From Callorhinchus milii (lineage: Eukaryota), in NCBI RefSeq assembly GCF_018977255.1, contig NW_024704953.1, forward strand, positions 1 to 64,000: 64,000 nt of DNA, read 5' to 3'. The notes below the pieces were generated by a model that was not told where the DNA came from, searched no databases, and worked only from the letters and a program-made list of their open reading frames with translations. The translations under genes and the position numbers were made by a program. Every line of letters starts with the position of its first letter. Position 1 is the first letter of the stretch. Of this stretch, positions 5,663-49,241 are shown piece by piece.

Positions 5663-6544
5663 AGTACATCAGGTGTGAGAGCACAGAGATACACAGCGCT
5701 GTCAGACACCAGCAGCTCAAAGATGGATAATCTGGTGGCAGATTGGGAAGTGAGAAGCCGAGAAGAGAATCGAATTCCAATTCCTTCTCCTTTTCTTTCC
5801 TGATTGTCATATGAATCCCTTCATAGTATGAACTCTGGCTGTTTGCCTGTGTGGTGTCGGTACCAGAACAGGTAGTAATATCTCTCAGTCGTGGAATAGC
5901 TACATTCAAACGTCACCGTTTCTCTTTCTGTCTTCAGCATCAGTGCATCCTTCTGACTGACAGAGTCCCCACCACAGAGATCTGTAATAGACATGAAAGA
6001 TCACGACAATACATTATTCACTATTTGCCTGAATTATTTTACACCACCTTGTGACATCATCCTGCTGAAGCGATAGGCGCTATACGTTTTGTTACTTATC
6101 AAATAATAATCATCCATACAATTTATGTAACACATTGTCACGTCTACGAGTCTTCTTACGTTAATTGCTGTGTATTTTCAAGGGCGAAACGCATCCGTCA
6201 ATTGCACAAAACAGTGTTTCTCAAACAGTCGTCCATTGAATGAACACATTATTATTTATGGGATTATTACCGACGGGTTCAACCCTGGTTACATGGCGAC
6301 CGGGTTCCAGCTGACTACTGGGCAAAAAGTCGCGTTCGTGTGAAGTAAGGACACGTGCCCAAAGTTTTTCCAATCTGGGAATCGAACCTCTCACTTATGA
6401 TGCTAATGCTCTATCCAAAAGATACAGGACTCCATTAACTGTTGTTGAAATAGATCTGACAATCAGCAGCACCACTGAATCAGCTCAACACGACCTCACC
6501 TGACATAAGTTTCCCAGCACCAGACAGAGAGCAAACAGCTTCAT
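5663..6544 (-). pseudogene. TCR alpha/delta V pseudogene (family 1)
   Basis: V exon 5981-5663 (DLCGGDSVSQKD...ECSYSTTERYYYLFWYRH...PEFIL*RDS...DSAVYLCALT) has an in-frame TGA. Leader 6544-6500 is 1 nt shorter than its paralogs (phase 0 instead of 1). 23-RSS is intact: CACAGTG 5662-5656, 23 nt, ACAATAACT. Confidence 0.85.
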
Positions 6545-6997
6545 TGCTGCTCTTCAGTCAGTGTGGTTGTGTCTGTGACATCAATTTGCTGATAACAGCC
6601 AATTGAGCACAGCAGTATCCCACATATAGTCGTGGATTTATTGACCTTTTTTTTAAAATTAAATGTAAAGGTGTGACGAACACGTGGAAGTATTGTAAAA
6701 AATAATAAATTACATTTGCAAAGCGAAATAAATCGACAGTAAGTGGAGCTGTAATGCATAACTCGTTTGCCAAATGCTGTCTGCATTTATTGTGACAGAT
6801 AACAATGTGAGCGTTGAGCTGACAAGTCGATGTGAGGTTAATGTGGTTTCCTCTGAGTCTGGTTACACATACGTCTGCTTCCCGCGGGGCCTCAAGGCCT
6901 GAACAAGGTTCCGCACACACTTCAACAGAGAGATCATCCCTATGTACAAAGTGAAGTCACTTTTTGTACGAGACTTGCAGTGCAGTCTATCATTGTG

Positions 6998-7970
6998 GTG
7001 ACTCTCAAGGCACAGTAATACACAGCGCTGTCAGACACCACCAGTTCAGAGATGGATAAACTGGTGAATGAGTTTGATTTCTGGAGCTCAGCAGAGAAAC
7101 GGTTTTCAAATCCTTTTCCTTTGTCGGGATTATCACTGTGACTGTATCTGCTAATTATAAACTCCGGCAGCTTTTCCTTGTAATGTCGGTACCAGAACAG
7201 ATAGAAATAGCTTTGAGTCGTGGAATAGCTGCATTCAAAAGTCACCGACTCTCCTTCTGTCCTAACCATTGGGGCAGCTTTCTGACTGACAGAGTCCCCA
7301 CCACAGAGATCTGTAACAAATAGGGAACAGAACGAAAATTTTGCATTCACTCTTTGGCAGAGTTAGTTCTCCATCGCCTTGGAGTTTCTTCCAGAAGCGA
7401 AACGCGCTATACACATGAAATTGTTTAATCATGAAATAATATTCATGAATGTATTTTATATAGCACATTCTCACGTCGTTCAGACGTTTGCAGGAACCAC
7501 ACAGAGCAGATGGTACAGTGAATTGCTGTGTATCTTTGTCGGCGAAATTGGCACAGCAGTGTTTCACAACCAGTCGTGGAATCGGTATCCGAATTATCAT
7601 TTAATCTTTTTAATGCACTGCAGCCTCTGGAAAAGAGCTTCGCCGTTCCAACAAAAACGTTTGAATTCAGAAACTATTATTATTTGGACAGGTGTTTAGC
7701 CCCACTTTCTAAAACAACGGAGATCGCATTAATGCAGATAAACAGAGCCGGACGTTTTGAGTAAGGAAACTTGCACAAGGTTTCACCCTGTCCGGGAATC
7801 GAACCCAGGTCCTCTAGCTTGCGAGGCGAGTGCTCTCTCCACCGAGATACAGGACTCCACCAAGTGTTGCTGAAATGGACTCGACAATCAGCAGCGACGC
7901 TGAATCAGCTCAACACGGCCTCACCTGACATAAAGGTTCCCAGCACCAGACAGACAGCAAACAGACTCAT
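6998..7970 (-). CDS. TCR alpha/delta V gene (family 1), apparently functional
   Basis: Leader 7970-7925 MSLFAVCLVLGTFMS+G/GTGAGG. V exon 7310-6998 is open with Cys, WYR and YYC (…DSAVYYCALRVT). RSS CACAATG-23-ACAAAAAGT (6997-6959). Confidence 0.92.
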
Positions 7971-9160: not shown

Positions 9161-10485
9161 CTGAGCTCTATCTGCAGATGCCCAATGATCACCTGTAAGA
9201 TATTTGAGGTGATTGGCACCAGTCCACAGAGTTATGACGTGTGCTTTCATTTACACCGTCCAATAGGTTAAGTGTAAAACATCCACCAGATCAGAAACAA
9301 AGTCCAATAAATTATTTTTATTTGATTAGAAACATACAACCATAGGTTCCTGGAATATAACATAACAGATGGAGGCCATTCTGCCCATCGAAACAGTGCT
9401 ATGCCATGAAAGATTTAATAATTCCTTGCATAAAGGTGAAAATGAAAATTGCAAACTTAGTCTGTGACTGTTTGTTGAACACCGCTTTGCGAAATTGCCT
9501 GCCGCACTTCCACAATATACAGACAATTCACTTTATAGTGTATTCCGTGAAGCATTTTAAGACGCCGTGATTGATAAAGCGCTATATCAAGTGCAAGCAT
9601 TATTTAATTATTAAATATATTGATATTCAATTTCTATTTTAGACTTGCCTTTCAGGTTTGACCCGTGAAGTTGATGTGAAAGAGCTAAGCAATCGTACCT
9701 ACTCCCCTATTATTTCCCAATAGCTCTGTATTTTTTTTCCTATGTAAGTACCTGTCCAATTCCGCTTTGAAAGCTGTTATCGAATGTGGTTCCATCAAAC
9801 ATTCAGACATTACATTCTGAAGACTAACACGTCTCCGAGTTCATCAATGTCGCCTCATCTCTCCTCCAGATATTTTGCAAATTATCTTCAATCTGCAAAA
9901 TAAAGTCAGGAGCTGTACACGTTTTATATGTAAACGAAGTGTGACATGCGCTATCCGTTAAGAGGTTGGACTGAAAGTCAATACTCGTTTAAATCATGTT
10001 CCAATCATAAAATATTAATGTCAAAAAACATGTCCCTGAAGTTGGTGCAGTTAAACCTCACTGACACCAAAGATCTGAAACTATGTGGTCAAAAGTGCAA
10101 AAATACTGAGAAAGTGGGAAATCTCAGATTGTTGCGTATGATATAATGTGAAAAATCGTGACTGTAGCTTTAAGTAAACTTACAATCAATTAACGTCAGA
10201 GGGTATCCTGTAATAGCGCTTTGAGAAGCCTGGAACACCTGATCAGAGGCTATATTAAATGTAAGGATAATTATTATTTATTTCACTCTTTCCCGACATG
10301 AAACACTCCATCACATTTTGCTTTTGGTTGGCAGTTATCATATGTTTCCTATGAGAGACACAGCGGCAAAGTTACAAACTGTTAAATAGGTCAACAGTCA
10401 GGAATAACATCTGTATTGAGATGAAACCCTTTCTCTCCTCTTTGAAGGGTTTTGTACAGTGGTGTAGTCTGACAGCAACACTGTG

Positions 10486-10770
10486 TGTGTTATGGCAGAT
10501 TAATGGTTGGTGTTAGATAGAGCCATTGGGAAAATGGACACATTGGATCTCTTCGTCCTCGTGTCCAGATTTGGCGCTAAATGTTGTGTTGCAAACTCAG
10601 CCCAGAAAGTGTCTCCATCATCAAAATGTCTCCGCGTTTACAGATGATGCTCCCCTGGATATTGACTCTATCAGAACATTAAAACATTGTTGAGATCAGC
10701 AGATTAGGTGCAGCTCAGGGTTACAGTCTGACCTTCAGTAACAGACACTTCCATTGTGATTTGAAATAAA
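10486..10770 (-). pseudogene. TCR V pseudogene with intact 23-RSS, ~1 kb downstream of supporting V A
   Basis: Frameshifted, stop-containing V remnant (…FSAK…SNVSIFPMALSNTNH*SAIT) ending at CACAGTG (10485-10479), 23 nt, ACAAAACCC. Paralogs at 40.8, 50.7 and 61.7 kb. Confidence 0.7.
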
Positions 10771-11165: not shown

Positions 11166-11705
11166 ACAGTAAAATATCACATCACGGATTCTCATTGTAT
11201 ATATATTTTTTATTATTGACACTTGGTGCATATTATTATTTTACTGACCATAATCCTACAGAATTTTGAATCACCTCTCTCACTCTGAAAAAGAAACTGT
11301 TGGTTGCGACGATTTTACTACGAAATAAAATGAAATTTACATCGTAATCTCTGAAGCGCTTTTTGACGTCTCAACGAAGTGATACGCCACGACATCAAAC
11401 ACAAGGACGATAACATTTTATTAGGTTTTTATTACCGTAATTATGAACATCTGTAACTCACTAATTATCCGAATTCCGACAATGGTTCATCACAGTGTAA
11501 TATGTGTTGGTGAAAAAAAAATATTCAGCGAGTAAAATATCACATATTTTAAATGAATTAATATGAGCTCAATCAGTTAAAAGCCATGGTGGCAGTTTGG
11601 AAAAGGTTTGTTACACTGTCTGTCACTGACTGTACTGTATTGTTTTCCAGCTTTGGTTGTGATGAGGGTTATTGTACGAGGCTTCCTATGATGTGTATCA
11701 CTGTG

Positions 11706-12007
11706 GTGCAGACTGAGTGCACAGTGGTACATAGCGGAGTCTGTCAGCCGCAGGCCGGCGATGGTTAAAACGCAGATTTTCTTGGCAGTGTCAAGAGAAG
11801 CAGAAATGTGATCTCTAGTGGGGTTCCCTCCCTCTCCTGAGGGTTTTCTGTGGAGCAGGTATTTGAGTTCCTCGCCAGGGGTCTGACGGTACCAGGAGAC
11901 GTTGAAATCCTTTCCACAGAATCCTGAATATTGGCAATGTAAATGTATCCTCTCACCAGAAAAAGCACTTTGCTCAGGCGGTGACTGGGAAACTGTATAT
12001 CTGGATC
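11706..12007 (-). CDS. TRDV: Leaderless NAR-TCR-supporting TCR-delta V, cassette A (open)
   Basis: Acceptor cccgcag, then phase-1 exon GSRYTVSQSPPEQSAFSGERIHLHCQYSGFCGKDFNVSWYRQ…KKICVLTIAGLRLTDSAMYHCALSLH. CDR1 Cys is present and no leader was found between it and J A. RSS CACAGTG 11705-11699, 23 nt, ACAATAACC. Confidence 0.9.
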
Positions 12008-12033
12008 CTGCGGGACGCAAATTACAGGTTACT

Positions 12034-12510
12034 TAGAATTATGGCATCATGGAACCTAACCCAAACACAACCCTTTCAGGCAGTGCATTGCAGACTGTAA
12101 CAACTTTCTTTGCAAAAAAAAATCCTCATTATCTCACCTCTGGACCTTTTACCACTTAACATAAATTTGGGTTCACTGGTTACTGAAACGCTGACCAATG
12201 AGAATATTTTATATTGATCCAATCTATCACACGACCTCACAAATATGAACACTTCAATCAAATCTGCACTCAACTTTCGGTCTCTAAGCAGAACATTACC
12301 AGAGACCCGAGTATCTTCATTTGAATGAAGCCTCTCGCCCTGGGCATCATTCAATAAAATCTCCTTCGAACCCTGTCCAAGGCCATAGCACTTTCCCCAA
12401 CGTGTCCGTGAAAATCTTTATACTAAATGTAAGAATCACTGTTCAATGAACGGTAGAAAGAGCCGAGGAATGGATAAAATTTGAGTGCTGCTCTGCACCA
12501 TCCAACGTGT
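12034..12510 (-). mobile_element. CR1 LINE 3' end abutting the supporting V A acceptor
   Basis: Decayed ALDRVRRRF-type motif and a CR1-like 3' tail ending 26 nt before the exon. The same element is present in all four supporting-V introns. Confidence 0.75.
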
Positions 12511-12799
12511 GGCTATTGCTGTGACACCATTGTTATGATCGCTCAACAATGCAACGTTTAATTAAGCTTTTTTTATCTTCTACTTAGCCTATGATCAGGG
12601 GAATGTTTAGCAGAGAATCAGGTGTCAGATTGTGCCGTTAAATCAGTGGATTTACAGATGAGGCAAATGGAAAGTTTCCCTTCTGTAAATGCCGATACGT
12701 TAACATCGCTGTTGGAGGAGGTTCAGTCTCTGATTTGTTGCCAATATCAGTTTCCCTCTCAGTCTGTGAGCTGCTCATTGAAGCAAAGTACTCTCTCTC

Positions 12800-12911
12800 T
12801 CTCTATCTATCTATCTATCGCTCTCTCTCTCTCTGTTTTTTTTTGTTTGTTTCTCTCTTTCTTTCTTACTTTCTGTCATTCTTTCTTTCTGTTATTCTTT
12901 CTTTCTGTCAT

Positions 12912-12946
<35 letters not shown>

Positions 12947-13020
12947 CTCCTTCTTTACGTATCCTCTTCTTTATCTCTTTCACCCTTTCCTTCTCTCTAA
13001 ATCGCTTTTCTTTCTTTCTT
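12800..13020. repeat. (TCTT)n/(TC)n microsatellite
   Basis: Read directly; the paralogous positions in cassettes B (N gap 37989-38296) and C (48.1-48.3 kb) are also purine/pyrimidine tracts. Confidence 0.9.
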
Positions 13021-13159
13021 CAACTTTCATATCTTACATAAACAGAAATCGATGCGTAGCAGCAAGCTTGATATTAACTTTTATACGTTTATTAAACACT
13101 CAGCATGTATAAAGTGGGTTAACTTTTCACATTAAATCGGAACTGGGGGACAAAGAAAC

Positions 13160-13670
13160 AACAACAACGATATTGCACTTATTGAGCGCCTTTCACGTCG
13201 GGAGGACGTCCCAAGGCGCTGGACCAAGTTGGGTAAGGACCCGAGCAAGGAGGAGAAATGGTCAGTGTGAGGGGAGGGAATGGATGGAGCGAGGAGGTGG
13301 AAATGGTCAGGGTGAGGGGAGGGAATGGAGGCAGCGAGGAGGGGTTAGAGAGTCGAGAGGGGAGCTGACGGCAATGTGAAAGAGAAAGGTCTTCAGACCG
13401 GCCTTGAAGGAGGAAAGGGAGGAAGCGCCGAAGGCACTGGGGATGGAGTTCCAGAGCCTCGGGGCTGAGAGGCTGAAGGCCCGACCACCGATGGTAGGGC
13501 GGTTGGGGCGGGGGATGTGGAGCAGACCTGAGCCAGAAGAACGGAGGGTACGGGCAGGTATGTCGAGGGACAGTAGGTCGGAGAGGTAGGAGGGAGCGAG
13601 GCCGTGAATGGCCTTGTAGGCGAGGATGAGGATCTTGAATTCGATCCTCTGGGGCACGGGAGAAGTTTGT
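13160..13670 (-). mobile_element. L2-clade LINE 3' fragment in the J-to-supporting-V intron of cassette A
   Basis: ORF 13307-13849 contains RIEFKILILAYKAIHGLAPSYLSDLL…RTLRSS…GGRAFSLSAPRLWNSIP…FKAGLKTFLF, the L2 RT C-terminus. The 3' tail has (TTG)n. Confidence 0.85.
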
Positions 13671-14088
13671 ATAATATTACACATTGGAGCCAGTTCAGTT
13701 CGAAAGAAACCCCACTTCTTGGGAGAATTGAGGAGGATAGGGATTTTTATCATTTCCTTTGACCCAAGATATCTTGCTTCAAGTAAACACCGGAATTTAC
13801 AGTCAACATTTCCTCCGGGTATATCTCTTTGGAACCAATATCCAGACAAAGTTAGTGACTTTACAAAACATAAAATAAAAGCTGATCATTTCAGAAACAC
13901 GCTTCATATTTGGAGCTCAGTAATCCTTTTTGCAACACAGAATGCATTTTTCTTCATAATTGCTAATATCGGTTGTAGGAAAGGCTCAGTTGTAAATAAT
14001 TGGGAGCTGTCGTTCAGAATAATACACTTTACAAATTGACTTGAATAAAGTTTCATTTTAGTACGAAAGAAGTTTTTTTCTCACTTAC

Positions 14089-14144
14089 TTTCAGTTACAG
14101 TTAAATTGGTTCCTGATCCATCTTCTGTGTATTCATCGCAATAC
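14089..14144 (-). other. NAR-TCR J segment, cassette A
   Basis: 5' RSS AGGTTTTGC-23-GACTGTG. Coding YCDEYTEDGSGTNLTVTE+A, then GTAAGT; phase 1 is compatible with the supporting V exon. Confidence 0.88.
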
Positions 14145-14521
14145 CACAGTCACACAACTCTCATCCTACACAGTGCAAAACCTGTTGTATCAGATCATGG
14201 TTTAATACTGTCACAAATAAAACAGATGTTGACAAATGGGTCAATAATTTCGATTTGATCAACACTTTCCGAACTTCAGACTTTTTATTTGTCCATATCA
14301 TGTTTCTATTCATTGTTTCCACCCAAATACTGACGAAAATGACGGCCCAGAGAACAGTTTTGGGCAAAATTTATACAAAATGTCAGTTTGAAATAAATAA
14401 TATTGAAAGCAAGCTTTCGACATATTAAGCAGCATAAAATAGGCACAATTTTCAGTGATCACGTCTCATGTATTTTCATGAAAATAGCTGTGCGGTATTT
14501 GTGCCGTTGTTTTGCACTGTG

Positions 14522-14537
14522 ACTCTCCCAAACACAG
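14522..14537 (-). other. NAR-TCR D segment, cassette A (12-D-12)
   Basis: GGTTTTTAT-12-TACTGTG [CTGTGTTTGGGAGAGT] CACAGTG-12-ACAAATACC. Confidence 0.9.
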
Positions 14538-14879
14538 CACAGTATTTAATGTCAACATAAAAACCAATGGTTTGATCAACAATTGATATGTGTTCTGCAA
14601 TTTAAAATCAACCAATCAATGACATAACGTGTAAAATTCTTTTGAATATTGTCCCAGTAGGACTTTGTATGCCTCAGCAATAAATTGTTATTGATACGAA
14701 ATCAAGCAGAATTCTTCGACAGATTCGTAATCATTTTTCCTAAGTATTCACAATAATGGTCGTCTCTTAAAGGAAGTGATATTAAACATCACCGCATGTC
14801 TCACACCAATGAGGAATGCGCATTGAACTCATTGACAAGTTCACATTCTCTGTGTTTTAACGGCGAGTTGGTGAATGGG

Positions 14880-17800
14880 CTTTTTGTATTGTTGGAAGCC
14901 CAGATACAGCATTGTGAACCTTCACCAAAGCTTAAAGCGTGCCAGCAATATCGAGCCTTACAGTAATAGTCAGCGCTGTCTTCAACTTGCAAATCATTAA
15001 TTTCCATAGAAGATGACCACGATTCCATGTCTGTCTTTACAACAAACCGTCCTTCACGAGGGATGGGCTTCCAATCTCTTTCATTTGGAAACCGCCTATA
15101 AAACTCCATAATTTTGAATACGCTTTGATAACTTGCTGAGAAGACACAGTTGATGGTTAAAGACTCGCATTCTTGTCTTCTAACAGGAGACGGTGTCTGC
15201 GTTACTTTAGCGCTGAAAACATCTGAAAATTATTCACAATATTACATCAGTTTAACAGATCTTCAAATTTGACCACTTCTATTGCAAATCCATTGCAAGC
15301 ATTGGCTTGTTTTCCCTTGATATCAGCAAATATAATATAATCATAATTATGTAATATAATTATAATATTAATTAGTCATATCATTGTAATGTATAACGAA
15401 ATTAAAGCAAAATAATTGACTGCCGCGTTTCGCCCACAAAATACAAAGTTATTTCAGTACACAAACCAATGTTTGAAGCGACCTGAGACGTCCCATCCAC
15501 ATCTTAACGCTATACATCAATTACACGGATTATTTATATTGTGCAAATATAGTATTGATGACATTCACTGCTGCAGTGTAGTGCTGTGTTATGGAAACAA
15601 CCACTTACATTGTAAGAAGAGGAAGGAGATGGAGACACAGAGGAGAGACATTCTCTCACCGCTGGGAGTTACCGTCAGCCCCGGACACCTCAGAGTGACT
15701 GTGAGTAACACAGGGCTGTTCTGTAAGAGCGTTGGAGACTTGGTTTATTTGTGATGAACAGCGTCACATCATGGCTGGTGTCAGCGGCTTTGAAGGGTGG
15801 GCGGGGGCTGGTTTGGGTGTGGAGGGGAAGAATATACATGAGGAAAGGGACTGACTCACTGTGCCCGAGAGCAGTGGGCAGAGAGGGCGATTTGGGAATA
15901 ACTATTCGAGTCTCATTTAGGTTTAAATAGACAATTGACGGGGAAGCCAACGAGATGGAGTATAATCTGACACTGTGAGAGGGACAAAGGCTGTTTGGTG
16001 TAGAGAGGGCTTTACTGGGAATTGGGAAAGGTACATAAAGAAACTACTTACACACCTTTGACTTGAAGAGAGTCCTGTTACAGTGACCAGCAGCAGGATG
16101 GGGAAGCCGGTCAAGGCAGCAGAGAGTTAGTGAGATATGGGTGATGATGGATGGGAAGGTGTAGGGAGAAATTGGAGTAAAGGAGTATGGCATGCGGTGG
16201 TTTTATAATTCATGGGAATAGAGGGGGTGACAAAGGGATGATGGAGGAGGAAGAGAAGGCAGCGAACATGATGGTCACTTTTCAGCGTATCATGGGAAGG
16301 AGTTTTTCACGACTTAACGATATGGTAATGCACTGTATTATTATACAAGCAATACTATTAATTCCTGACTGTCTGTCTCTATTTCCGTGTGTCTGTGTAT
16401 CTGTATGTGTGAGTGTGTGTGTGTGTGTCTGTCTGTCTGTCTCTGGCTGTGAGACTGTGTGTGTTTCCCTCTCACTCTCCCTCTCTTTCTCTCTCTCTCA
16501 ATCTCTCTAGCTGTGTTTCTTTGAATCGTTAGTAAAGCTTCCTTGCTGCACACACATACGCCTCTGTTTAATGTTAAGTGCAACCCGCTTGTTTTTCGAA
16601 TGTTTAACCTCTTTCCAGCGGTAAAACATCTCTGCCATATAATAATAATAATTGAATTAGTAATCCATCACTAAATATGGGACGCCGCCTCTTTTAGGCG
16701 AAACGTGCCAATGGTTTCGCCTAAAAAACAGTCTCGACGCTTTACAGTATATTTGTGAAGTGTTTGGTGGCGTCTCGTTGACGTGATGGGGCGCTGTATA
16801 AAATGCAAAGATTGTTAGTTTTGTTTATTCTTTTCAGAAATATCATTGGTCTTGAGCATTGTGGTGATTTAGCGGTGTGAGGAGAGCTGATCACTTTGGA
16901 ATAAGAAGTTTGGGATTATTTTTTGACTTGAACGATGGACTGGGAGAGCAAAGCAGTTTTGGGATGTGTGTGAGGGAGAGGCGGTAGGTTGATCATGTTG
17001 GAGTCCACTGTCATCTTATAAGCCTTATAATCCTTGCATTGTATATGGATCCTTGTCACGACGCGAAGAGATTCAAAAAATATACTGAAGAGTTGATTGA
17101 TATTATATTTTCTTGGAAAAATAAATCATCCAATTGTGCACAGCAGTATCCCAAAAACAATCGCAGATTGAGCGATCGAATTAATATTTTACTCATTTAT
17201 TTATTTTCTTGCTTAAAAAAATCAATGCATGTGTTTTCTTTTTTAATTAAACATAGTTTTAATTATCTACGAATCGAGTAACAAGTGGGCTCCTACTTAT
17301 TTTTAGGTAAACAAAGAGACGTGTGAATTAAGGTCAATTGCCTAAATTCCAACCAGGAATCGAACCAGCTCCTCTCACTACTGATATATTGCTCTAACCA
17401 CTAAGTAAAGACAACACGTTGCGTGCAGTGCTCAGCACTAATAAGGTTTCCTACTGATGCGAAAACTGCTGCATAAAAATGAGATTTTTGTATTGTTAAA
17501 CATCGACATCTATTGGCATTTCAGGAGAATGTCAGGAGTTGAAGTATCAAACCTAAAATCTTGGTTAGAATTACCAGAGTGTGCATTGTGGACTGTACAC
17601 CATTAATATGAATATTCAGATTAAAACCCTCCACTTCAACAGCGCCTTCATCAACCTCTACTTAAGATATCTTTCCTCCACGAATTCCCCCCACCATAAC
17701 AGGACTTGTTTAAATAGATCACCTGTCAGACGAACATCTGTGCTGAGATCAAACCTTCTCTCTCCTCTTGAGTGATTTAGTTACAGTGGTGTAGTCTGTC

Positions 17801-18200
17801 AATAACACGGAGAAATAATAATAATATTCCTTGCATTTGATACAGCGACTGATCACATTTGCCAGAAGTCTCAAAGCGCTTCAAAGGATACGCTGCAAAA
17901 TCGAGTGACTGTATATGTTGTGGATGAAACGCAGCAGCCAACGGCACTCATCGAAGTCCCTCAAACTGTCGTGGATTGAGATGAACAATTTATTATTATT
18001 ATTTTTTAAAAGTATCATTACCCCAGAAAAAGCGATCCGCCAATCGACAACCAACCGCTTTCCTACTAACTGTGTTTTGCCCGATTGGGAATCAAACATA
18101 AATCCAGTCGATTGCGAGGCGAGTGCTCTAACATCTAAGCTACAGGACTTGAATGGATTGAAATTGTCTTTGCAAGAACTTTTCGTTTATATGTAAAACA
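14880..18200 (-). repeat. Left arm of a near-identical inverted segmental duplication (partner ~33370-36660)
   Basis: Long exact matches in reverse complement, e.g. the duplicated ORFs MACGGFIIHGNR… (16187 + / 34866 -) and MDPCHDAKRF… (17039 + / 34222 -). Confidence 0.9.
14917..15651 (-). CDS. NAR-TCR V gene, cassette A (IgNAR-like V, open)
   Basis: Leader 15651-15609 MSLLCVSISFLFLQ. V exon 15222-14917 reads YVFSAKVTQTPSPVRRQECESLTINCVFSASYQSVFKIMEFYRRFPNERDWKPIPREGRFVVKTDMESWSSSMEINDLQVEDSADYYCKARYCWHALSFGEG. It has VNAR hallmarks (SLTINCV, CDR2 deletion, INDLxVEDS). RSS CACAATG-22-ACAAAAAGC. Confidence 0.92.
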
Positions 18201-18286
18201 ACGAAAGCAGAGTTCTTTGGGGTAACATTGTGCCTGAAGGTTAGTTGGGTTTGTGTACAGGGAAGTCATTGCCTTGCAGCACTGTG

Positions 18287-19194
18287 CATCTGATCTTAAG
18301 CCACAATAGTACGTGGCAGAGTCAGTGACAATGACACTGAGAATGATTAATGTGGTTTGTTCCTGATTCTTGTCCAGATGTGAAGTGAAACGGCCTTTGG
18401 CGTAATCTGCAGTGTTGTCTACCCCATTGGTATGTCTGTAGAGAATGTATTGTGGAGCGAGGCCTGGGTGATGTCTGTACCAGTACAGAGCAGCATAGTT
18501 CGAGCTGGTGGTATATGAGCAGCTCAGACTCACTGTGCCTCCCTCTTGTTTGCTCAGCCCCGTTGTTTGCTGTCTGACTGGATCTCCCAGCACCACATCT
18601 GCAACGAGAGGAAAGGATCAACTTGAAACATGGCTCCATATTACTCCTGTAGTCCAGTGGACAGTGCACTCGCCTCGAAGGGAATGCGACTCGGGTTTTA
18701 TTCCCTGGAAGGACAGGGATAAACTTTGGGAAGTTTCCTATCTATACATACGCCTTTGTTTACCGAGCAGTAAGTAGAAACCCAGTTGTTAATCGATTGG
18801 CTAAATAAAGTGTGGTCACTCAATCCACGACTGTCTGTGGGGAAAATGCTGAGCGAATTAAGATGCCACTTTTCGAACACGAAATACGGAATCACTATGC
18901 TGTCAAGTATATGCTTTCAAGTGGCTCGAAATACCTCCAAAAGGGGAAAAGTCGCTATATCGAATGCAAGGGCTATTAATATTATTATTATTATTAATAT
19001 TACGCTTCCGCAACTAATAATTTGACTACTAACCCACTTTGGGAGACAAAACCAAGAATGCTAAACACCTTGAGACTTCCTCCAGATGAGACAGTCTCCA
19101 TATAAATATTAATCTGTATTATATGCTACACAGCCTCACCTGACATAAAGCTCAACAGGAGAAGGTAATCCATGAACAGTCGCATTGTCGCCAT
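18287..19194 (-). CDS. TCR alpha/delta V gene, apparently functional
   Basis: Leader 19194-19140 MATMRLFMDYLLLLSFMS+G/GTGAGG. V exon 18598-18287 DVVLGDPVRQQTT…SLSCSY…WYRHHPG…DSATYYCGLRSD. RSS CACAGTG-23-ACACAAACC. Confidence 0.9.
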
Positions 19195-20299: not shown

Positions 20300-21279
20300 G
20301 TGAGACTTAAGGCACAGTAATACACAGCGCTGTCAGACACCACCAGCTCTGAGATGGATAAACTGGTGGATGAATTGGATGTCTGTAGCTGAGCAGAGAA
20401 ACGAATTCCAAATCCTGTTCCTTTACTTGATGTCATTCCCAGAATATCTCCAAATTATAAACTCCGGCTGTTTGTCTGGGTAATGTCGGTACCAATAGAG
20501 AATGTAATACTTTCAGTCGTGGAATAAGTACATTGCAAAATCGCAATTTCTCCTTCTTTCTTAACCATCTGGCAGCTTTCTGACTGACGGAATCACCACA
20601 CAGAGTTCTGTAATAAACATGGAAGAGCAGAACATATTATTCACTCGGTGCCTGAGTTATTTTTTGAGCGCATTTGAACGTCCTCCCGACGAGAAATGGC
20701 TATACATAAGTCCATGTTAACAATGAATTATACCATTCAATGTATTTTATATAAAGCATTATCACATTGTTGGGAGGTCTTGATACGCTTCACAGAATTT
20801 GCTGTCGAGTTAAGTGCTGTGTATTTTGGGGGGAGAAACCCGATAGCCAATTTCGCACAGCAGTGCCTAAAATAAAACAGTGCTGGAATGTATTACCAAA
20901 TAGTTATTTTTTAAAAAAGATTATTTTCCTTGGAATATAGATCAGACAAACCACTAAACACGTTTTTGAATTGAGTTATTATTTGAAAAGTTATTACCTC
21001 CGAGTTACAAATCAGGGGGGATTCTACTTACTGCTGTTTAAACAGAGGCATGTGTGTGCTTGAGCAGAGAGAAAACAAGCTTATGTATTCATCCTGCCCG
21101 GGAAACGAATCCCTGTCATCTCGCTTGCGAGGCGAGAACTCTAACCACTGAACTAAAGGTTTCCCTCCACCAGTTGTTGTTGAAATGCAGTTGACAGTCA
21201 GCATCGACATGAATTAGCTCAACGCTGCCTCACCTGACATGAAGGTTCCCAGCACAAGACAGACAGCAAACAGCCTCAT
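20300..21279 (-). pseudogene. TCR V (family 1) with multiple 1-nt deletions; pseudogene or assembly error
   Basis: Leader 21279-21234 is intact. V exon 20607-20300 has several single-base deletions relative to its paralogs at 7.0 and 42.9 kb. The RSS spacer is 21 nt with a shortened nonamer. Confidence 0.75.
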
Positions 21280-21965
21280 TGCTGCTCTTCAGTCTGTGTG
21301 GTTGTGTCTGTGCCACCAGTTTGCTGATAACCCGCAGTGATTGTCGGCTTTGGCGGAGCCACAGTCTCACGTCACGTCAATGGCATCTTAGCCGCGTTTC
21401 AACACAACAAACAATTGCTTTTATACAGTGGCTTTCACCAGGCACTGGGGGCAAGGAACCACTCAGCTCCTGGTAACTCTGCAAGCAAAAGCTTCGATGT
21501 AGGGACACACCAAATTTTCCAGGTATCTCAAAGCGCTTCACAGCATCTGTGATCAGGTGCAGTGACTCTATATTTTGTGAGCGAGATGCGGCAGATTATT
21601 TTATTGAAGGTATTATTATCGGCGGAAAAGCAATTCCCAAATCAGGTTCCTACCTACTGATAAGTAAACATTGGCGTGTACAGTTAGGAGGCTTGCCCAA
21701 CATTTCTCCCTGCCGAGAGTCGAACCCACCTCTCGATTGCGATGCATGTATTTTCACCACGGTTATGGCAAGAATATGTCATCGTGGGATCAATTAATTG
21801 TTTGTGTTACAATCAGAATTGCTGTTAATGTTATGTTCTCTTTGTGTCTTTTTCTCGTCTCCTTTCCCACAGGAAATCGCTGCTGCGGCCAAGAAAGACA
21901 GAAGCACAAACCCACTAAAGGCTGTTAGTTTTTGAACGAGTCTCTGACTGGTACCCATCACTGTG

Positions 21966-22819
21966 TGTTGGAGAGCACAGTAATACACAGCGCTGTCAGA
22001 CAGCTCCAACAGGGAGATGGTTAAACTGCTAAATTTTTTCGAGATTTGGAGCTCAATAGAGAACCGCTTTTTAGCAAAATCTGCTTTATATGTACTACAA
22101 CCGGAATGCTGTTGAAGCACATACTGTGGTTGTGTTTCTTCTTGTTCTCGATACCAGTTTAAATAGTAGTTGCTCAGAGACGTATCATAATGGCATTCCA
22201 TGGTCACACTTCCTCCTTCTTTCCCAGTCACTGTAGCCACCTTCTGTGTCAAAGAGTCTCCCTGGGTCAGGCCTGGAAGACAAGAGCGTGGAGTTCTGTA
22301 GCTCAGTGGTTAGAGCGGTTGCCTCGTAAGAGATACAACCCGGGTTCGATTCTCGGAGAGGACAGGGCACAATGTTAAGCAAGTTTCCTTAACGCACACT
22401 CCTCTGGTTAACCAACGCTAAGTAGAAATCTGTTGGTTAAACAATTAGCTGATCCCTATCCGGGAAGAATATTCCGTTCAAAAAGAAAATAAAAGACATT
22501 TTTGAAATGTAGTCAGTGAATCGTTGATTATTTGGGGGACACTACTGTGCGCAATTGGCTACCGAGTCTCCCCCGCGAAACAGAAAGTCTCTGCAGTTGA
22601 CAGTATATTACTTGAAGCGCCTTGAGACTGCTCGAAAACATATTGAAGCGCCATATAAAACGCGATTGCAATGATTATTATGTTTAATAATATGAGCAGA
22701 AAAGGAAACCGATTCAGTTACAAGATATAATTTTTTTTTAAGATTTATAATTGTTATAATAAATTACCTATTAAAATGGCAGCGAGAACCAGACACAAAC
22801 TGGTTCCCTCCAACCCCAT
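21966..22819 (-). CDS. TCR alpha/delta V gene, apparently functional
   Basis: Leader 22819-22768 MGLEGTSLCLVLAAILI+G/GTAATT. V exon 22272-21966 GLTQGDSLTQKVATVTGKEGGSVTMECHY…WYREQ…HSGC…DSAVYYCALQ. RSS CACAGTG-23-TCAAAAACT. Confidence 0.9.
22290..22460 (+). mobile_element. tRNA-derived SINE in the leader intron of the 22 kb V
   Basis: ggagttctgtagctcagtggttagagc…ggttcgattc head followed by the family body. Confidence 0.75.
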
Positions 22820-25802: not shown

Positions 25803-26578
25803 GGCCTCTTGGCGCAGTAATACACGGCACTGTCCCTGACCAGGACGGTGACAATACTCAGTTCGAAATCTTCAATCGTTTCATTGACTTTGGCGGAGAA
25901 TCGATCTGGGAAGTCAGGGCTCCTGTAATCAATCCTTCCAACAGAGTAAAGTACGCAGACAGGAGCGTTCCTGGAAGCTTGTCGATACCAAAAGAGACTG
26001 TACGCGTCACTTATTTTCTTTAAGGTGCAGGATAATTTCACATCTTTACCCTCTTCAACTGATATTTCAGCAATCGGTTGATTCCCAATGTCTTGCAGGC
26101 TGTTTCCTGTCATTTAAAACAACATATTGTTGAGCAGCAAGTTTGTCTAATATGGAGACTGCAGTGTATTGGTGAGAGCATTCGCCTCAGAAGCAAGAGT
26201 TATGTGTCTTTCATATCAGGAAAAGGGAAAGCTGAGGACATTTTCCCTACTCCATACGCCTTTGTTTAAGAAGCAGTAAATAGGAACACGTTTACCAGTC
26301 GTTTGGCGCCTCTCTTTTCCAGGGGTAATTAGCCCTTCAATAATGGATCAATAATGAAACAGATAATAATTTGGTCATTCAATCCATGATTATTTGAAGA
26401 AAACTGCTGAGCACAATCGGCTCCAATGAAGGATAAGGCACTATATCAAATGCAATGATTATTAATATTATAATGCGGCAAAAGGTATAACAAGATATTA
26501 GAAAAAGAAGGTATACAAAAGATACTAACGGCAAAGTAAGCTGAGAGTGATTGAGAGCACAGCACATGTCTCCCACAT
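25803..26578 (-). CDS. TCR alpha/delta V gene, apparently functional (divergent family)
   Basis: V exon 26106-25803 GNSLQDIGNQPIAEISVEEGKDVKLSC…WYRQ…DSAVYYCAKR. RSS CACACTG-23-ACACAAACT. Probable leader 26578-26530 MWETCAVLSITLSLLC+C/GTTAGT is less certain. Confidence 0.82.
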
Positions 26579-29640: not shown

Positions 29641-30420
29641 GGGCTCAGTGCACAGTAATACTCCGCGGAGTCTGTAACTCTCACTTGGAATATATTTAAT
29701 GGGACGGTTCGCTCCGCTTTAGACACATTCGTTGAGAAACGTTCTTTTGCAAAGTCGGCCTCGTCTTTGATCCTGTTGTTAGTGTCTGTGCTAAGGATAT
29801 ATTCTGGAGCTATGATGGAATAGTGTCGGTACCAGAACAGATAGTCACTGATGCCGCCTGTAGCTGTATAATTACACTGCAGAGAAACATCCTCCCCTTC
29901 AGTCACTGTCACAATCGATTGGAGCTGTGTTACACTTTCTCCACCACATCGTCCTGGGAAACAGAAATACAACAACAACAATAATTATAATGTTGTTTGG
30001 TACAGCGCCTTATAGCCTCGTTGCTATGTCACCAAACACTTCACAGAAGATAACGTGACTGTGCATTTTGTCGGCGAGACGTGTGATCGCATTGCTAGCA
30101 GTCGTAGTACTTTTAAATAATTATTAGCCCCTAAATGAGATCCATCAATCCAGGAACTAAATGGCAGCTGTGTAAACGGATAATGTGCAGAGTAAGGCAA
30201 CTTGTCAAAGGTTTCAATCGAACAGAGTTGCTATCGCTTGCGAGGCCAATTCGCTCTCCAATGAGCTACAAGAATCTGCGAGTCATATTACATATTGGAT
30301 ATTTAATGCAGTAAAAATTAAGCGTTGGATAATACGGTCAGGAACCAGTCTGACAGAACCAGTTCATCGCTTACCTGACAAGGTAATGATCACTGCAGCC
30401 ACATAGATAAACATTGCCAT
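29641..30420 (-). CDS. TCR alpha/delta V gene, apparently functional
   Basis: Leader 30420-30375 MAMFIYVAAVIITLS+G/GTAAGC. V exon 29953-29641 GRCGGESVTQLQ…SLQCNY…WYRHY…DSAEYYCALSP. RSS CACAGAG-23-ACAAAAACT. Confidence 0.9.
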
Positions 30421-31947: not shown

Positions 31948-32371
31948 TCTCCACTGCACACAAGTAGGTAGCGGCGTCTGTCACTTCTGTGCGTGTGATG
32001 CTCAGATTACTGCCCTTCTCTCTATAGTTCATTGTAGCTGTGATCCTCTCCTTCTGCTGCTCTCCTGTCTTTCCTGATACCAAGTGTTTGAGAGGCTGGT
32101 TCGGATACTGTCTGTACCATTGTAAGATGCGATTCTGTTCTGTTGTAGAACAGTTGATAATTATTTGTTCCTTCTCCACAACTGTCACAGTGAGTGGCGA
32201 TTGGGAGACTGTATCCTGACCACTCACTCCTGGTAAATAAAAAACATTGTTTTCGTGAAACTCACCCATTAATTTAAGTAGAACTACATACAATTTCTGT
32301 AAAGCACACTCACCCCAGAGGGTCACGGCTGCTTTCAGGAGCAGGAACACTAAAGTGTAATCGCACTTCAT
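31948..32371 (-). CDS. TCR V gene, TRAV-like (short loops, ends CAVET)
   Basis: Leader 32371-32314 MKCDYTLVFLLLKAAVTLW+G/GTGAGT, 84-nt intron, V exon 32229-31948 GVSGQDTVSQSP…IINCSTT…WYRQYP…DAATYLCAVET. RSS CACAGTG-23-ACACAAACC. Confidence 0.9.
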
Positions 32372-33369: not shown

Positions 33370-36300
33370 TTATTTTACATATAAACGAAAAGTTCTTGCA
33401 AAGACAATTTCAATCCATTTAAGTTCTGTAGCTTAGATGTTAGAGCACTCGCCTCGCAACCAACTGGATTTATCTTTGATTCCCAATCTGGCAAAACACA
33501 GTTAGTAGGAAAGCGGTTGGTTGTCGATTGGCGGATCGCTTTTTCTGGGGTATTGATACTTTTAAAAAATAATATTTTTTTCTCTCAATCCACGACAGTT
33601 TGATGTACTTCGATGAGTGCCGTTGGCTGCTGCGTTTCATCCACAACATATACAGTCACTCGATTTTGCAGCGTATCCTTGGAAGCGCTTTGAGACTTCT
33701 GGCAAATGTGGTCAGTCGCTGTATGAAATGCAAGGAATATTATTATTATTTCTCCGTGTTATTGACAGACTACACCACTGGAACTAAATCACTAAAAAGG
33801 AGAGAGAAGGTTTGATCTCAGCACAGATGTTCGTAGACAGTTGACCTATTTAACAAGTCCTGTTATGGTGGGGGAATTCGTGGAGCAAAGATATCTTAAG
33901 TAGAGTTTGATGAAGGCGCTGTTGAAGTGGAGGGTATTAATCTGAATATTCATATTAATGGTGTACAGTCCACAATGCACACTCTGGTAATTCTAACCAA
34001 GATTTTAGGTTTGATACTTCATCTACTGACATTCTCGTGAAATGCCAATAGATGTCGCTGTATAACAATACAAACATCTCATTTTTATGCAGCAGTTTTC
34101 GCATCAGTAGGAAACCTTATTAGTGCTGAGCACTGCACATAACGTGGAAAAAAAATGATAGGCAATTATCCTTACTTCACACGTCTCTTTGTTTATCTAA
34201 AAATAAGTAGGAGCCCACTTGTTACTCGATTCGTAGATAATTAAATCTATGTTTAATTGAAAAAGAAAACACATGCATTGACTTTTTTAAGCAAGAAAAT
34301 AAATAAATGAGTAAAATATTAATTCGATCGCTCAATCTGCGATTGTTTTTGGGATACTGCTGTGCACAATTGGATGATTTATTTTTCCAAGAAAATATAA
34401 TATCTATCAACTCTTCAGTATATTGTTTGAATCTCTTCGCGTCGTGACAAGGATCCATATACGATGCAAGGATTATAAGGCTGATAAGATGACAGTGGAC
34501 TCCAACATGATCAACCTACCGCCTCTCCCTCACACACATCCCCAAACTGCTTTGCTCTCCCAGTCCATCGTTCAAGTCAAAAAATAATCCCAAAAGTGAT
34601 TATCTTCTTATTCCAAAAGTCATTATTTTCTTATTCCAAAAGTGATCAGCTGCTCCTCATCAAACCGCTAAATCACCACAATGCTCAAGACCAATGATAT
34701 TTCTGAAAGGAATAAACAAAACTAACAATCTTTGCATTTTATACAGCGCCCCATCACGTCAACGAGACGCCACCAAACACTTCACAAATATACTGTAAAG
34801 CGTCGAGACTGTTTTTTAGGCGAAACCATTGGCACGTTTCGCCTAAAAGAGGCGGCGTCCCATATTTAGTGATGGATTACTAATTCAATTATTATTATTA
34901 TATGGCAGAGAATTTTTTCCGCTGGAAAGAGGTGAAACGTTCGAAAAACAAGCGGGTTGCACCTAACATTAAACAGAGGCGTGTGTGTGCAGCAAGGAAG
35001 CTTTACTAACGANNNNNNNNNNNNNNNNNNNNNNNNNNNNNNNNNNNNNNNNNNNNNNNNNNNNNNNNNNNNNNNNNNNNNNNNNNNNNNNNNNNNNNNN
35101 NNNNNNNNNNNNNNNNNNNNNNNNNNNNNNNNNNNNNNNNNNNNNNNNNNNNNNNNCGGAAATAGAGACAGACAGTCAGGAATTAATAGTATTGCTTGTA
35201 TAATAATACAGTGCATTTCCATATCGTTAAATCGTGAAAAACTTCTTCCCATGATACGCTGAAAAGTGACCTTCATGTTCGCTGCCTTCTCTTCCTCCTC
35301 CATTATACCTTTGTCACCCATTCTATTCCCATGAATTATAAAACCACCGCATGCCATACTCCTTTACTCCAATTTCTCCCTTCACCTTTCCATCCATCAT
35401 CACCCATATCTCACTAACTCTCTGCTGCCTTGACCGGCTTCCCCATCCTGCTGCTGGTCACTGTAACAGGACTCACTTCAAGTCAAAGGCGTGTGAGTAG
35501 TTTCTTTATGTATCTTTCCCAATTCCCAGTAAAGCCCTCTCTACACCAAACAGCCTTTGTCCCTCTCACAGTGTCAGATTATACTCCATCTCGTTGGCTT
35601 CCCCGTTAATTGTCTATTTAAACCTAAATGAGACTCGAATAGTTATTCCCAAATCGCCCTCTCTGCCCACTGCTCTCGGGCACAGTGAGTCAGTCCCTTT
35701 CCTCATGTATATTGTTACCCTCCACACCCCAAACCACCCCCCGCCCACCCCTCAAAGCCGCTGACACCAGCCATGATGTGACTTTGTTCATCACAAATAA
35801 ACCAAGTCTCTCTCCAACACTCTTACAGAACAGCCCTGTGTTACTCACAGTCACTCTGAGGTGTCCGAGGCTGACGGTATCTCCCAGCGGTGAGAGGATG
35901 TCTCTCCTCTGTGTCTCCATCTCCTTCCTCTTCTTACAATGTAAGTGGTTGTTTCCACAACACAGCACTACACTGCAGCAGTGAATGTGATCAATACTAT
36001 ATTTGCACAATATAAATAATCCGTGTAATTGATGTATAGCGTTAAGATGTGGATGGGACGTCTCAGTCGCTTCAAACATTGGTTTGTGTACTGAAATAAC
36101 TTTGTATTTTGTGGGCGAAACGCGGCAGTCAATTATTTTGCTTTAATTTCGTTATACATTACAATGATATGAACTAATTTATATTATAATTATATTACAT
36201 AATCATGATTAAATTATATTTGCTGATATCAAGGGAAAACAAGCCAATGCTTGCAATGGATTTGCAATAGAAGTGGTCAAATTTGAAGATCTGTTAAACT

Positions 36301-36660
36301 GATGTAATATTGTGAATAATTTTCAGATGTTTTCAGCGCTAAAGTAACGCAAACACCGTCTCCTGTTTGGAGAGAAGAATGCGACTCTTTAACCATCAAC
36401 TGTGTCTTCTCAGCAAGTTATCAAAGCGAATTCAAAAGTATGGAGTTTTATAGGCGGTTTCCAAATGAAAGAGATTGGAAACCCATCCTCGTGAAGGACG
36501 GTTTGTTGTGAAGACAGACAAGGGATCGTGGTCCTCTTCTCTGGAAATTAATGACTTGCAAGTTGAAGACAGCGCTGATTATTACTGTAGAGCTCGATAT
36601 TACTGGGATACCACAATGCCGTATCTGGGCTTCCAACAATACAAAAAGCCCCGTCACCAA
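33370..36660 (+). repeat. Right arm of the inverted segmental duplication (partner ~14880-18200)
   Basis: Reverse-complement match starts at ~33373 (ttttacatataaacgaaaagttcttgcaaagac = rc of 18165-18197). Weaker homology continues to ~41.5 kb versus ~10.0 kb. Confidence 0.9.
35898..36611 (+). pseudogene. NAR-TCR V gene, cassette B (1-nt frameshift)
   Basis: Leader 35898-35940; V exon 36327-36611. CCCATCCTCGT versus CCCATCCCTCGT in cassettes A and C shifts the frame to a stop. RSS CACAATG-22-ACAAAAAGC is intact. Confidence 0.82.
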
Positions 36661-37002
36661 CTCACAGGAAAAACACAGAGAATGTGAACTTGCCGATTAG
36701 TTCAGTGCATGTTCCTCATTCGTGTGTGATGTGCAGCTATGTTTAAGAATACTTCCTTTAAGCAGCGACAATCAGTTAGGAATACTTAGGAAAAGTGAGT
36801 GTGTATCAATCTGAAGTTACTACGTTGTTTGGATTCATATACCTTATAAATTATTGCAAGGGACAGACGGCATGCAAATTTACTGAGAAAATATTCAAAA
36901 GAATTTTACACGTTATGTGATTAATTGATCATTTATAAATAGCCGAAATCATTTGAATTGTTTTGCAAAACCTGTGTTTTTGTGTTCTTATTAAACACTG
37001 TG

Positions 37003-37017
37003 CTTGACTGGGGAAGC
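37003..37017 (+). other. NAR-TCR D segment, cassette B (12-D-12)
   Basis: TGTTTTTGT-12-CACTGTG [CTTGACTGGGGAAGC] CACATTG-12-ACAATTACC. Confidence 0.9.
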
Positions 37018-37400
37018 CACATTGGAAAACATCAGCACAATTACCGCAATGCTAATTTTCACGGAAATACATGAGACGTGATCATTGCTAACATTGTCCT
37101 GTTTTGTGCTCCAGAAAGTATCGAAAGTTAGCTTTCAATATTAATTATTTCCACATATTTTGTAGAATTATTTGCAGAAAGATGTTCTTCGGTCTTTGCG
37201 CTTTGACTGTGTTTATGTGGAAAACTTACTGAAAATAAGCATGATTTGGACAAAGGAATACTATACAAATGGGACTGTGTGGTATAAGTATAGGAATTTA
37301 TTAACAATTTGTCTGCATTTGCTTGTTTTGGTGCCAGGATTAAACCATGACTCGATGGAACAGTTTTTGCACCTTGTAGAGTCAGAGCTGTGTTACTGTG

Positions 37401-37456
37401 TTATTATAAGGAATATACAGAAGATGGATCAGGAACCAAAGTAACTGTAACGAAAA
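37401..37456 (+). other. NAR-TCR J segment, cassette B
   Basis: AGTTTTTGC-23-TACTGTG; YYKEYTEDGSGTKVTVTK+A, then GTAAGT. Confidence 0.9.
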
Positions 37457-38699: not shown

Positions 38700-39320
38700 G
38701 CAATAAAACATGGCTCAGCGACAAGAAATGCCTATTTTAATACATCCCATTGCTCCTTCCACTGTTGATGTAACATTAATCCCTACATTTATCTTTGTAC
38801 CTTTCACGGACACATGCGTGAAGGCCTTGGACAGGGTGCAAAGGCCATTTAGCAAAATGATACCAAGACAGAGGGAATTAGTTTGTATGAAGAATCTGGC
38901 AATCTTCTCCTGAGAGCATCGAAGGTTTAGCGGAGATTTAGATGAAGTGTTCAGAGCTGTGAGTGTTTTTGATAGAGCAGAGAAGGATAACATGCTTCCA
39001 CTGGCAAGTGGTTCTGTCACCAATGAACCCAAATGTATGATAAGTGGTAAAAGAACAAGAGGGGAGAGCAGAAGGATTTATTTTCACAGAAAATTCCTAT
39101 TGAATGCAATGTGCTGCCTCAACGGGTGGTGGAAACAGATTCGAAAGATAATTTCAGTATGGAATTGGCTGGATGCATCAACAGGAATTATAAAGTTCTA
39201 TGTGTTCATTGCGAGAGAGTGGGATTATATTGGTTGGCTCTTTTCAAAGCTCTTTTCACAGACACGATGGGCTGAATGGCCTCTTTTTGTGCTGAAAGAT
39301 TCAATGATTCCATGACTCTA
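38700..39320 (+). mobile_element. CR1 LINE 3' end abutting the supporting V B acceptor
   Basis: KALDRVQRPFSKMIPRQRELVCMKNLAIFS*EHRRFSGDLDEVFRAV (CR1 ORF2 end). The 3' tail gattcaatgattccatgactcta ends 26 nt before exon start 39347. Confidence 0.85.
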
Positions 39321-46927: not shown

Positions 46928-46944
46928 GCGGTATATTCGGAAGC
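46928..46944 (+). other. NAR-TCR D segment, cassette C (12-D-12)
   Basis: GTATTTTGC-12-TACCGTG [GCGGTATATTCGGAAGC] CACGTTG-12-ACAAATACA. Heptamers are non-consensus but retain the critical CAC/GTG. Confidence 0.8.
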
Positions 46945-49216: not shown

Positions 49217-49241
49217 GTTAACTATAATTTTCATACCGCAG

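Follow-up and report, generated by a model that had tools for sequence, protein, structure and literature searches.

We argue that the start of contig NW_024704953.1 from Callorhinchus milii, the elephant shark (NCBI RefSeq assembly GCF_018977255.1), carries germline cassettes of NAR-TcR (also written NARTCR) within the variable (V) region at the alpha/delta locus for the T cell receptor (TCR). We put the probability of this reading at about 90%. The window is the whole stretch that was analysed, positions 1 to 64,000 of the forward strand. Every published defining feature of NAR-TcR was found in it on comparison with the list of Venkatesh et al. (2007, PMC1845163). The accessible text of that paper lists the traits as seen in nurse shark and elephant shark. 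On the side of the NAR-TcR V they are a leader, an a-b loop Cys and a WYRK motif that lacks its Trp. The delta V associated with it is leaderless and carries a Cys in its first complementarity-determining region (CDR1). According to the accessible parts of PMC1845163 and PMC3964593, NAR-TCR was reported from the C. milii genome in 2007 and 2014, and IgNAR and IgW were reported absent. The accessible part of a 2025 study maps NARTCR V segments in four elasmobranch genomes (PMC12227049). The receptor class, which a first-pass annotation of this DNA had correctly called known, and its presence in C. milii are not new, and what is new here is locus-level detail only: the status of each cassette, two extra partial cassettes, mixed orientation, a larger duplicated module, and a layout of recombination signal sequences (RSSs) that chimaera and sharks have in common. 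It is doubtful that the window holds details of the holocephalan array that the accessible papers lack, but the candidates would be the 22-bp spacer, inversional joining, the module of cassette plus V, and an extension in cassette A.

Three cassettes, A, B and C, have the same anatomy, and a script located their elements in the order that the first-pass annotation had read. The leader exon is 43 nucleotides (nt) long (MSL[LI]CVSISFLFLQ plus 1 base) and has a GTAAGT donor in phase 1. An intron of 386-391 nt separates it from the NAR V exon, which is 285-306 nt long across the cassettes and is followed by an RSS of the pattern CACAATG-22-ACA[AG]AAA[GC]C. About 320 nt past this RSS is a diversity (D) segment of 15-17 nt between two 12-spacer RSSs. 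About 310 nt past the D is a joining (J) segment of 56-58 nt (…DGSGT[KN][VL]TVT[EK]) with a 23-spacer RSS and a phase-1 GT[AG]AGT donor. Depending on the choice of nonamer, the spacer of the J RSS comes out as 22 or 23. In the germline V, D and J are still separate, with gaps of 304-325 nt from one segment to the next. An intron of 1.9-2.1 kb then leads to a second, leaderless V, which we call the supporting V. Its exon is 302 nt long, starts at a phase-1 YAG acceptor and is followed by CACAGTG-23-ACAATAACC.

Pfam classes both V exons as V-set domains. The best single-domain matches of the NAR V in PDB are the shark VNARs, the V domains of IgNAR, with E about 1e-12. The alignment with VNAR has a single one-residue gap, which makes the NAR V a short domain of the same kind. 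In a maximum likelihood tree the NAR V of the window groups with the elasmobranch NAR-TcR V and a VNAR (support 92/87). The a-b loop Cys (QECES in A and C) is present in at least 90% of 50 sequences, and it is a putative partner of the CDR1 Cys of the supporting V in a disulfide between the two domains. The WYRK Trp is replaced by F or Y: the motif is MEFYRRF in A and B and MDYFRHF in C, and it is F-F-[KR]-Q in elasmobranch models. A profile search found about 70 gene models with two V domains from sharks, skates, rays and sawfish, plus fragments from C. milii. Several elasmobranch database proteins (P0030, P0031, P0039, P0047 and P0085) are complete or rearranged V-V-C delta chains, where C is the constant region; UniParc lists the rearranged ones under identifiers only, with no names. 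Six sequences were aligned, those of the window together with one model from a holocephalan and models from elasmobranchs. Columns that do not vary among them are the Cys of the a-b loop, the two canonical Cys of the NAR V, the GS-T--TVT motif of J, and the CDR1 Cys and WYRQ of the supporting V. The predicted structure of a basking shark homologue has two V domains, with a predicted local distance difference test score (pLDDT) of 86.5 and a predicted template modelling score (pTM) of 0.73. In a fold search its first predicted domain superposes on VNAR with a template modelling (TM) score of 0.85, normalised to VNAR. Its two predicted domains are not placed like a pair of heavy and light chain V domains (VH-VL). 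Matches to tandem domains and single-chain variable fragments (scFv) hold at the level of the domain only, with a root mean square deviation of about 20 Å. No TCR mu entry surfaced in this fold search.

The supporting V belongs to a different family. It falls in a clade with the elasmobranch supporting V (support 98/97), and this clade is nested among TCR alpha/delta-type V, including the conventional V of the window. The CDR1 Cys is present in all 4 copies, as YSGFCG, YSGYCG or YSGICG. Tyr replaces the first canonical Cys in supporting V models of the horn shark (Heterodontus francisci, L002; P0007, P0008; LRYEYSGFC, LSYEYSGFC). A PDB sequence search with the supporting V was dominated by the scores of multi-domain scFv, and it does not discriminate TCR from immunoglobulin (Ig). 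The first-pass annotation had proposed an antibody-like VDJ spliced onto a leaderless TCR delta V. The defining residues, the tree and the loci of two sharks described below all support that design.

The arrangement of RSSs is another line of reasoning. We counted a site as RSS-like if its CAC was intact and it matched the consensus at 14 or more of 16 positions, and we took the expectation from Markov-1 simulations. There are 16 sites of the 23 type in the window where 0.2 are expected, and all 16 abut a V-like exon. There are 3 sites of the 12 type where 0.07 are expected, and each of these borders the D in cassette A or B. RSS-like sites are about 80-fold over expectation with each at a segment border, and the arrangement exceeds chance. 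A, B and C are paralogues, so their agreement with one another is not independent evidence. Such evidence is found in the loci of two database homologues, Cetorhinus (basking shark, L001) and Heterodontus (L002), where the layout is identical. Both have V-22, 12-D-12 and 23-J with a phase-1 donor, then an intron, then a V that lacks a leader and has a 23-RSS. The RSS spacers are partly similar in sequence between chimaera and sharks, and the 22-bp spacer of the V RSS is conserved.

We propose the following route from cassette to protein, which is suggested by the literature and the elasmobranch homologues. Each cassette would be one transcription unit driven by the promoter of the NAR V, with the leader of that V. 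In a developing T cell RAG would join the NAR V by its 22-RSS to its own D, which has a 12-RSS on either side, and the D to the 23-RSS of J. The D could not be skipped because of the 12/23 rule, so the argument for an obligatory D, made in the first-pass annotation, is correct under that rule. The leaderless V would be joined separately, by its 23-RSS, to the D-delta and J-delta segments that all cassettes would share. Splicing would then connect the leader to the NAR VDJ, the phase-1 donor of J to the phase-1 acceptor of the supporting V, and J-delta to C-delta. The product would be a delta chain of three domains. By analogy with IgNAR, an unpaired single-domain V would sit atop a supporting V that pairs with TCR gamma.

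It is worth considering a shorter route. The NAR V could also, or even mainly, join D-delta directly and give a two-domain chain of NAR V and C-delta. The 12/23 rule permits a V with a 22/23-RSS to join the 12-RSS side of D-delta, and trans-rearrangement of an IgH V to a TCR delta D has been documented in sharks. However, nothing in the window shows direct joining. A conserved private D and J together with a dedicated supporting V favour a two-step route under selection, and all database homologues that have a C region have both V domains. We consider direct joining improbable as the main fate of these segments or a regular one.

Cassette A is on the minus strand. Its leader exon is at 15609-15651 (MSLLCVSISFLFLQ plus 1 nt, GTAAGT donor, phase 1). 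Just upstream is a conserved promoter-proximal region (15652-15840). These roughly 190 nt are 80-90% identical among four cassettes, against 55-65% for the introns, and they hold a TATA-like AAATAAA and TGACG, half of a cyclic AMP response element (CRE). The NAR V exon (14917-15222; …ECESLTINC…MEFYRRF…DYYCKARYCWHALSFGEG) is open, and its identity rests on Pfam V-set, PDB VNAR and the tree. It is followed by the V RSS (14879-14916, CACAATG-22-ACAAAAAGC). The D (CTGTGTTTGGGAGAGT) is at 14522-14537, within 14494-14565, and its two 12-RSSs are at 14565-14538 and 14521-14494. The J RSS (AGGTTTTGC-23-GACTGTG) is at 14145-14183 and the J (YCDEYTEDGSGTNLTVTE + A), with its phase-1 GTAAGT donor, is at 14089-14144. 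After the intron (12008-14088) comes the open exon of the leaderless supporting TCR delta V (11706-12007, CDR1 Cys in YSGFCGKD) with its RSS, CACAGTG-23-ACAATAACC, at 11667-11705.

Cassette C is on the plus strand. It has a leader exon (45816-45858), an open NAR V exon (46250-46538; Pfam V-set, tree), a V RSS (46539-46576, CACAATG-22-ACAGAAACC), and a D (46928-46944) with two 12-RSSs, the whole at 46900-46972, with heptamers TACCGTG and CACGTTG. The region 47277-47373 holds the 23-RSS of J (47277-47315) and the J itself (47316-47373, VQWRTETKDGSGTKVTVTE + C). The leaderless supporting V exon (49242-49543; Pfam V-set, leader scan, tree) is open. The 23-RSS that follows it (49544-49582) is the same as that of cassette A, spacer included. 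Cassettes A and C look functional: all of their exons are open, the splice sites are intact and the RSSs are good.

Cassette B, also on the plus strand, is broken in both V exons. The leader exon (35898-35940), the V RSS with its 22 spacer (36612-36649), the D (37003-37017) with two 12-RSSs (36975-37045), the 23-RSS of J (37362-37400) and the J (37401-37456, YYKEYTEDGSGTKVTVTK + A; both within 37362-37456) are all in place, as is the 23-RSS of the supporting V (39649-39687). The NAR V exon (36327-36611) has a 1-bp deletion in a run of C near 36486, which shifts the frame into a stop. The supporting V exon (39347-39648) reads TAG in frame at 39520-39522, in place of the GAG of A and C. There is a gap of 308 N (37989-38296) in its J-to-V intron. 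The window also cuts through two more cassettes on the minus strand, both open over the part that is visible. The fourth (1-476) has a leader at 476-434 (MSVLCVSISFLFLQ), and its NAR V exon runs from 44 off the start of the window. The fifth (63007-63347, the 63-kb cassette) has an intact supporting V (63347-63046) and a 23-RSS (63045-63007), and its L-V-D-J part is beyond base 64000. The three cassettes of the first-pass annotation hold up in their outer coordinates and their spacers, which were exact, but it did not see that B is a pseudogene and it overlooked the two partial cassettes.

Selection was examined between A and C, the two most divergent intact cassettes. Nucleotide identity is 55-64% in samples of the J-to-supporting-V intron, and 64-65% in the leader-to-V intron and the V-D and D-J spacers. 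It is 86% in the 200 nt upstream of the leader, 95% in the leader and 89% in the V RSS. The NAR V is at 74% and the J at 72%, while the supporting V is at 92% and its RSS, including the spacer, at 100%. For the ratio of nonsynonymous to synonymous substitution rates (dN/dS), the NAR V gives 0.47 and the supporting V 0.37. This pattern fits a diversified antigen-binding V that would sit on a conserved structural V, and gene conversion may contribute to the similarity. Cassette A has a peculiarity. At the 3' end its NAR V exon exceeds those of B and C by about 20 nt (14917-14938 on the minus strand, encoding CKARYCWHALSFGEG), which adds an extra Cys and an FGxG-like motif right at the 22-RSS. 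When we looked for its source, the window proved to have no second copy. The J of cassette A also has a Cys (YCDEYTEDGSGT), so with the Cys of the V extension a germline-encoded CDR3 braced by a disulfide is conceivable. RAG activity could have left the extension as a footprint in the germline, or the extension could belong to a long CDR3 that is pre-built and braced in this way.

Several points weigh against the NAR-TcR reading. Cassette B is dead, with a lesion in each of its V exons. In B and C the heptamers of the D RSSs are off consensus (CACATTG, CACGTTG, TACCGTG). Some pairs of supporting V have a dN/dS near 1 (1.0 for A-E and 0.89 for A-B), so decay, or homogenisation by gene conversion, may affect part of the array. 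With cassettes on the two strands, inversional joining is required for some of them unless the scaffold is misoriented. We infer both the splice from J to the supporting V and the use of cassettes A to C. The match of phase at that splice is weak evidence. It is established that in Ig and TCR genes the donor of every J is in phase 1, as is the acceptor of every V exon, and the leaders of the conventional V found in our leader scan are phase 1 too. The match is necessary, but any J followed by any V would show it. The first-pass annotation gave the codons across the splice exactly, A|GA in A, A|GA in B and C|GT in C, all of which encode Arg, but the in-frame joining that it stressed is generic.

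A rival reading makes the whole array in the window a non-functional relic, a set of duplicated pseudogenes kept similar by gene conversion. The two inactivating lesions of cassette B, the V full of stops that stands beside A, B and the 63-kb cassette, and the dN/dS near 1 of some supporting V pairs all speak for such decay. However, every exon of A and C is open, their splice sites are intact and their RSSs are good. Conservation in the promoter, leader and RSSs is far above that of the introns, the dN/dS between the two most divergent intact cassettes is 0.37-0.47, and the defining Cys residues are kept. We argue that a relic has only a small chance of being the right description.

The claim that the supporting V has no leader of its own was checked with a scan for exons that combine an ATG and a length of 11-25 codons with a hydrophobic core and a donor in phase 1. 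A hydrophobic leader of 14 residues was found for 4 of 4 NAR V and a leader for 7 of 8 conventional V, but no leader-like exon was found within 900 nt of any of the 4 supporting V. A cryptic start is another way in which the supporting V could be used alone, as an ordinary delta or alpha V translated from an in-frame ATG in the intron, which is what public C. milii gene models take as given. Cassette C does have an open frame that starts with ATG (MASFCFARFSCTMILVNYNFHTAG…) in the intron and continues into the exon. A UniProt model from C. milii has the equivalent frame. In A, B and the 63-kb cassette, however, the same frame is closed by in-frame stops just upstream of the acceptor, and there is no candidate for a spliced leader within the 900 nt scanned. 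The public models read through the RSS, which makes them artefacts of germline read-through. This use of the supporting V is very unlikely.

These public models deserve a comment of their own. The nearest database matches of the window are C. milii models. One of them has 96.5% amino-acid identity over 143 residues to the supporting V of cassette C and its flanks, and the match extends into the translated intron and the non-coding sequence after the RSS that adjoin cassette C. The C. milii models run from intron through supporting V into the RSS, and some are chimeric for two V segments. Among the C. milii models (P0002-P0014) and the elasmobranch models (P0015-P0082) the annotation names include 'uncharacterized', 'immunoglobulin gamma-1 heavy chain-like', 'T cell receptor alpha chain MC.7.G5-like', 'DSCAM-like' and 'lachesin-like'.

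No similarity to TCR C-delta was found anywhere in the window, and no Ig domain was found in the ten longest open frames on the sense strand of the three J-to-V introns. An IgNAR-like minigene cluster, in which the J of an L-V-D-J unit splices to a constant exon and the downstream V is just the next conventional TCR V, is very improbable: it has in its favour that the N-terminal V is antibody-like with VNAR as its nearest solved relative, that cartilaginous-fish Ig genes are V-D-J-C clusters according to the accessible text of PMC1845163, and that 308 N of the cassette B intron are a gap, yet there is no C-type Ig domain in the introns or the window, the downstream V is leaderless in 4 of 4 cases where conventional V have a leader in 7 of 8, it belongs to a dedicated clade common to the elasmobranch supporting V, C. 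milii is reported to be without IgNAR and IgW, and the elasmobranch homologues are V-V-C delta chains. The first-pass annotation had named an Ig constant exon spliced to J and an own leader on the supporting V as the observations that would speak against NAR-TcR, and at the level of the sequence neither was found.

The cassettes stand in a field of V segments of TCR alpha/delta. There are at least 14 conventional V with a 23-RSS in the window, some open and some decayed, and D delta, J delta and C delta are outside it. Conventional TCR alpha/delta-type V, mostly with their own leader, are at 5674-7293, 18294-18593, 20302-20553, 21965-22255, 25805-26083, 29643-29936, 31952-32212, 42922-43212 and 59732-60010. 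The open ones are at 7293, 18593, 22255, 26083, 29936, 32212, 42922 and 60010, and those at 5964 and 20553 are broken. One V family is found 1.0-1.4 kb downstream of each cassette, at 10479-10736 (minus strand), 40799-41056 (plus), 50706-50819 (plus) and 61559-61810 (minus). The copies after A, B and the 63-kb cassette have many stops, and the one after C is open up to an N gap at 50826. This family recurs past every cassette, and therefore the duplicated unit is a cassette plus the neighbouring V. An inverted segmental duplication (14010-18201 against 37534-33370, 87-95% identity) bears A and B with their upstream flanks. With cassettes on both strands, some must rearrange by inversion if the orientation of the scaffold is right. 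Some mammalian V segments rearrange by inversion. The plus-strand block may instead be a misoriented contig bounded by N gaps. The inverted duplication spans the N gap 35013-35156, so such a flip would not be simply at this gap.

The introns and flanks also contain repeats. A decayed 3' tail of a long interspersed nuclear element (LINE) lies just upstream of the supporting V in all J-to-V introns (12079-12420, 38707-39312, 48646-49240), and a (GAAA)n microsatellite is common to them all (12838-12956 in cassette A). The intron of cassette A also has an insert like a short interspersed nuclear element (SINE) at about 13200-13700, and no Ig domain. The N gap of the cassette B intron is placed where the microsatellite sits in A. 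Rfam gives weak tRNA-like matches of 29-44 bits at 7784-7855 (minus), 22293-22364 (plus), 53088-53147 (minus) and 54975-55037 (plus), which are probably the heads of tRNA-derived SINEs.

NAR-TCR is among the clearest cases of an antibody-type single-domain V on a T cell receptor, and it bears on the question of whether the single-domain V was first a TCR or an Ig. Our findings leave the known picture unchanged. They do show that the full cassette logic, with its RSS spacers and the lineage of leaderless supporting V, is older than the split between holocephalans and elasmobranchs. A germline map from a chimaera provides primers and references for repertoire work, and it exposes how poor the automatic annotation of these genes is.

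The array is almost certainly the same gene family as the C. milii NAR-TcR of Venkatesh et al. (2007/2014), with which it has the diagnostic residues in common. The accessible text of those papers (PMC1845163, PMC3964593) gives peptide alignments and presence or absence, and it is without the anatomy of each cassette, RSS spacers, orientation or pseudogene status. The elasmobranch genes are the next comparison. They too encode a TCR delta chain that rearranges twice and carries its IgNAR-like N-terminal V on a supporting delta V with no leader, and they have the a-b loop Cys, the missing WYRK Trp and the CDR1 Cys of the supporting V. The nurse shark NAR-TcR was reportedly described by Criscitiello, Saltis & Flajnik in 2006. 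We cite elasmobranch NAR-TcR through the accessible parts of PMC1845163, PMC3457774 and PMC12227049. Amino-acid identity between the elasmobranch models and the window is only 38-46%. The leader (MSLLCVSISFLFLQ) is lineage-specific in the window, as is the J-to-V junction, which is TVTE/K-RS… against TVTA-DS… in elasmobranchs. The J-to-supporting-V intron is 1.9-2.1 kb in the window and 2.9 kb in the basking shark.

The V of IgNAR is like the NAR V of the window in its short V fold without C'', and it is sister to the NAR-TcR V clade. It differs in its location, which is in Ig clusters of the form V-D-D-D-J-C, in having retained the WYRK Trp, and in being secreted or bound to B cells. The window has one D and no C exon within a field of TCR V, in a species reported to be without IgNAR. 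TCR mu of marsupials and monotremes is a parallel in design (PMC3457774). Like NAR-TcR it has three domains, V-V-C, with an unpaired antibody-like N-terminal V and a supporting V of low diversity. The two are convergent and not homologous: TCR mu has a V derived from VH, its own C mu and tandem clusters, and in marsupials the supporting V is already joined in the germline.

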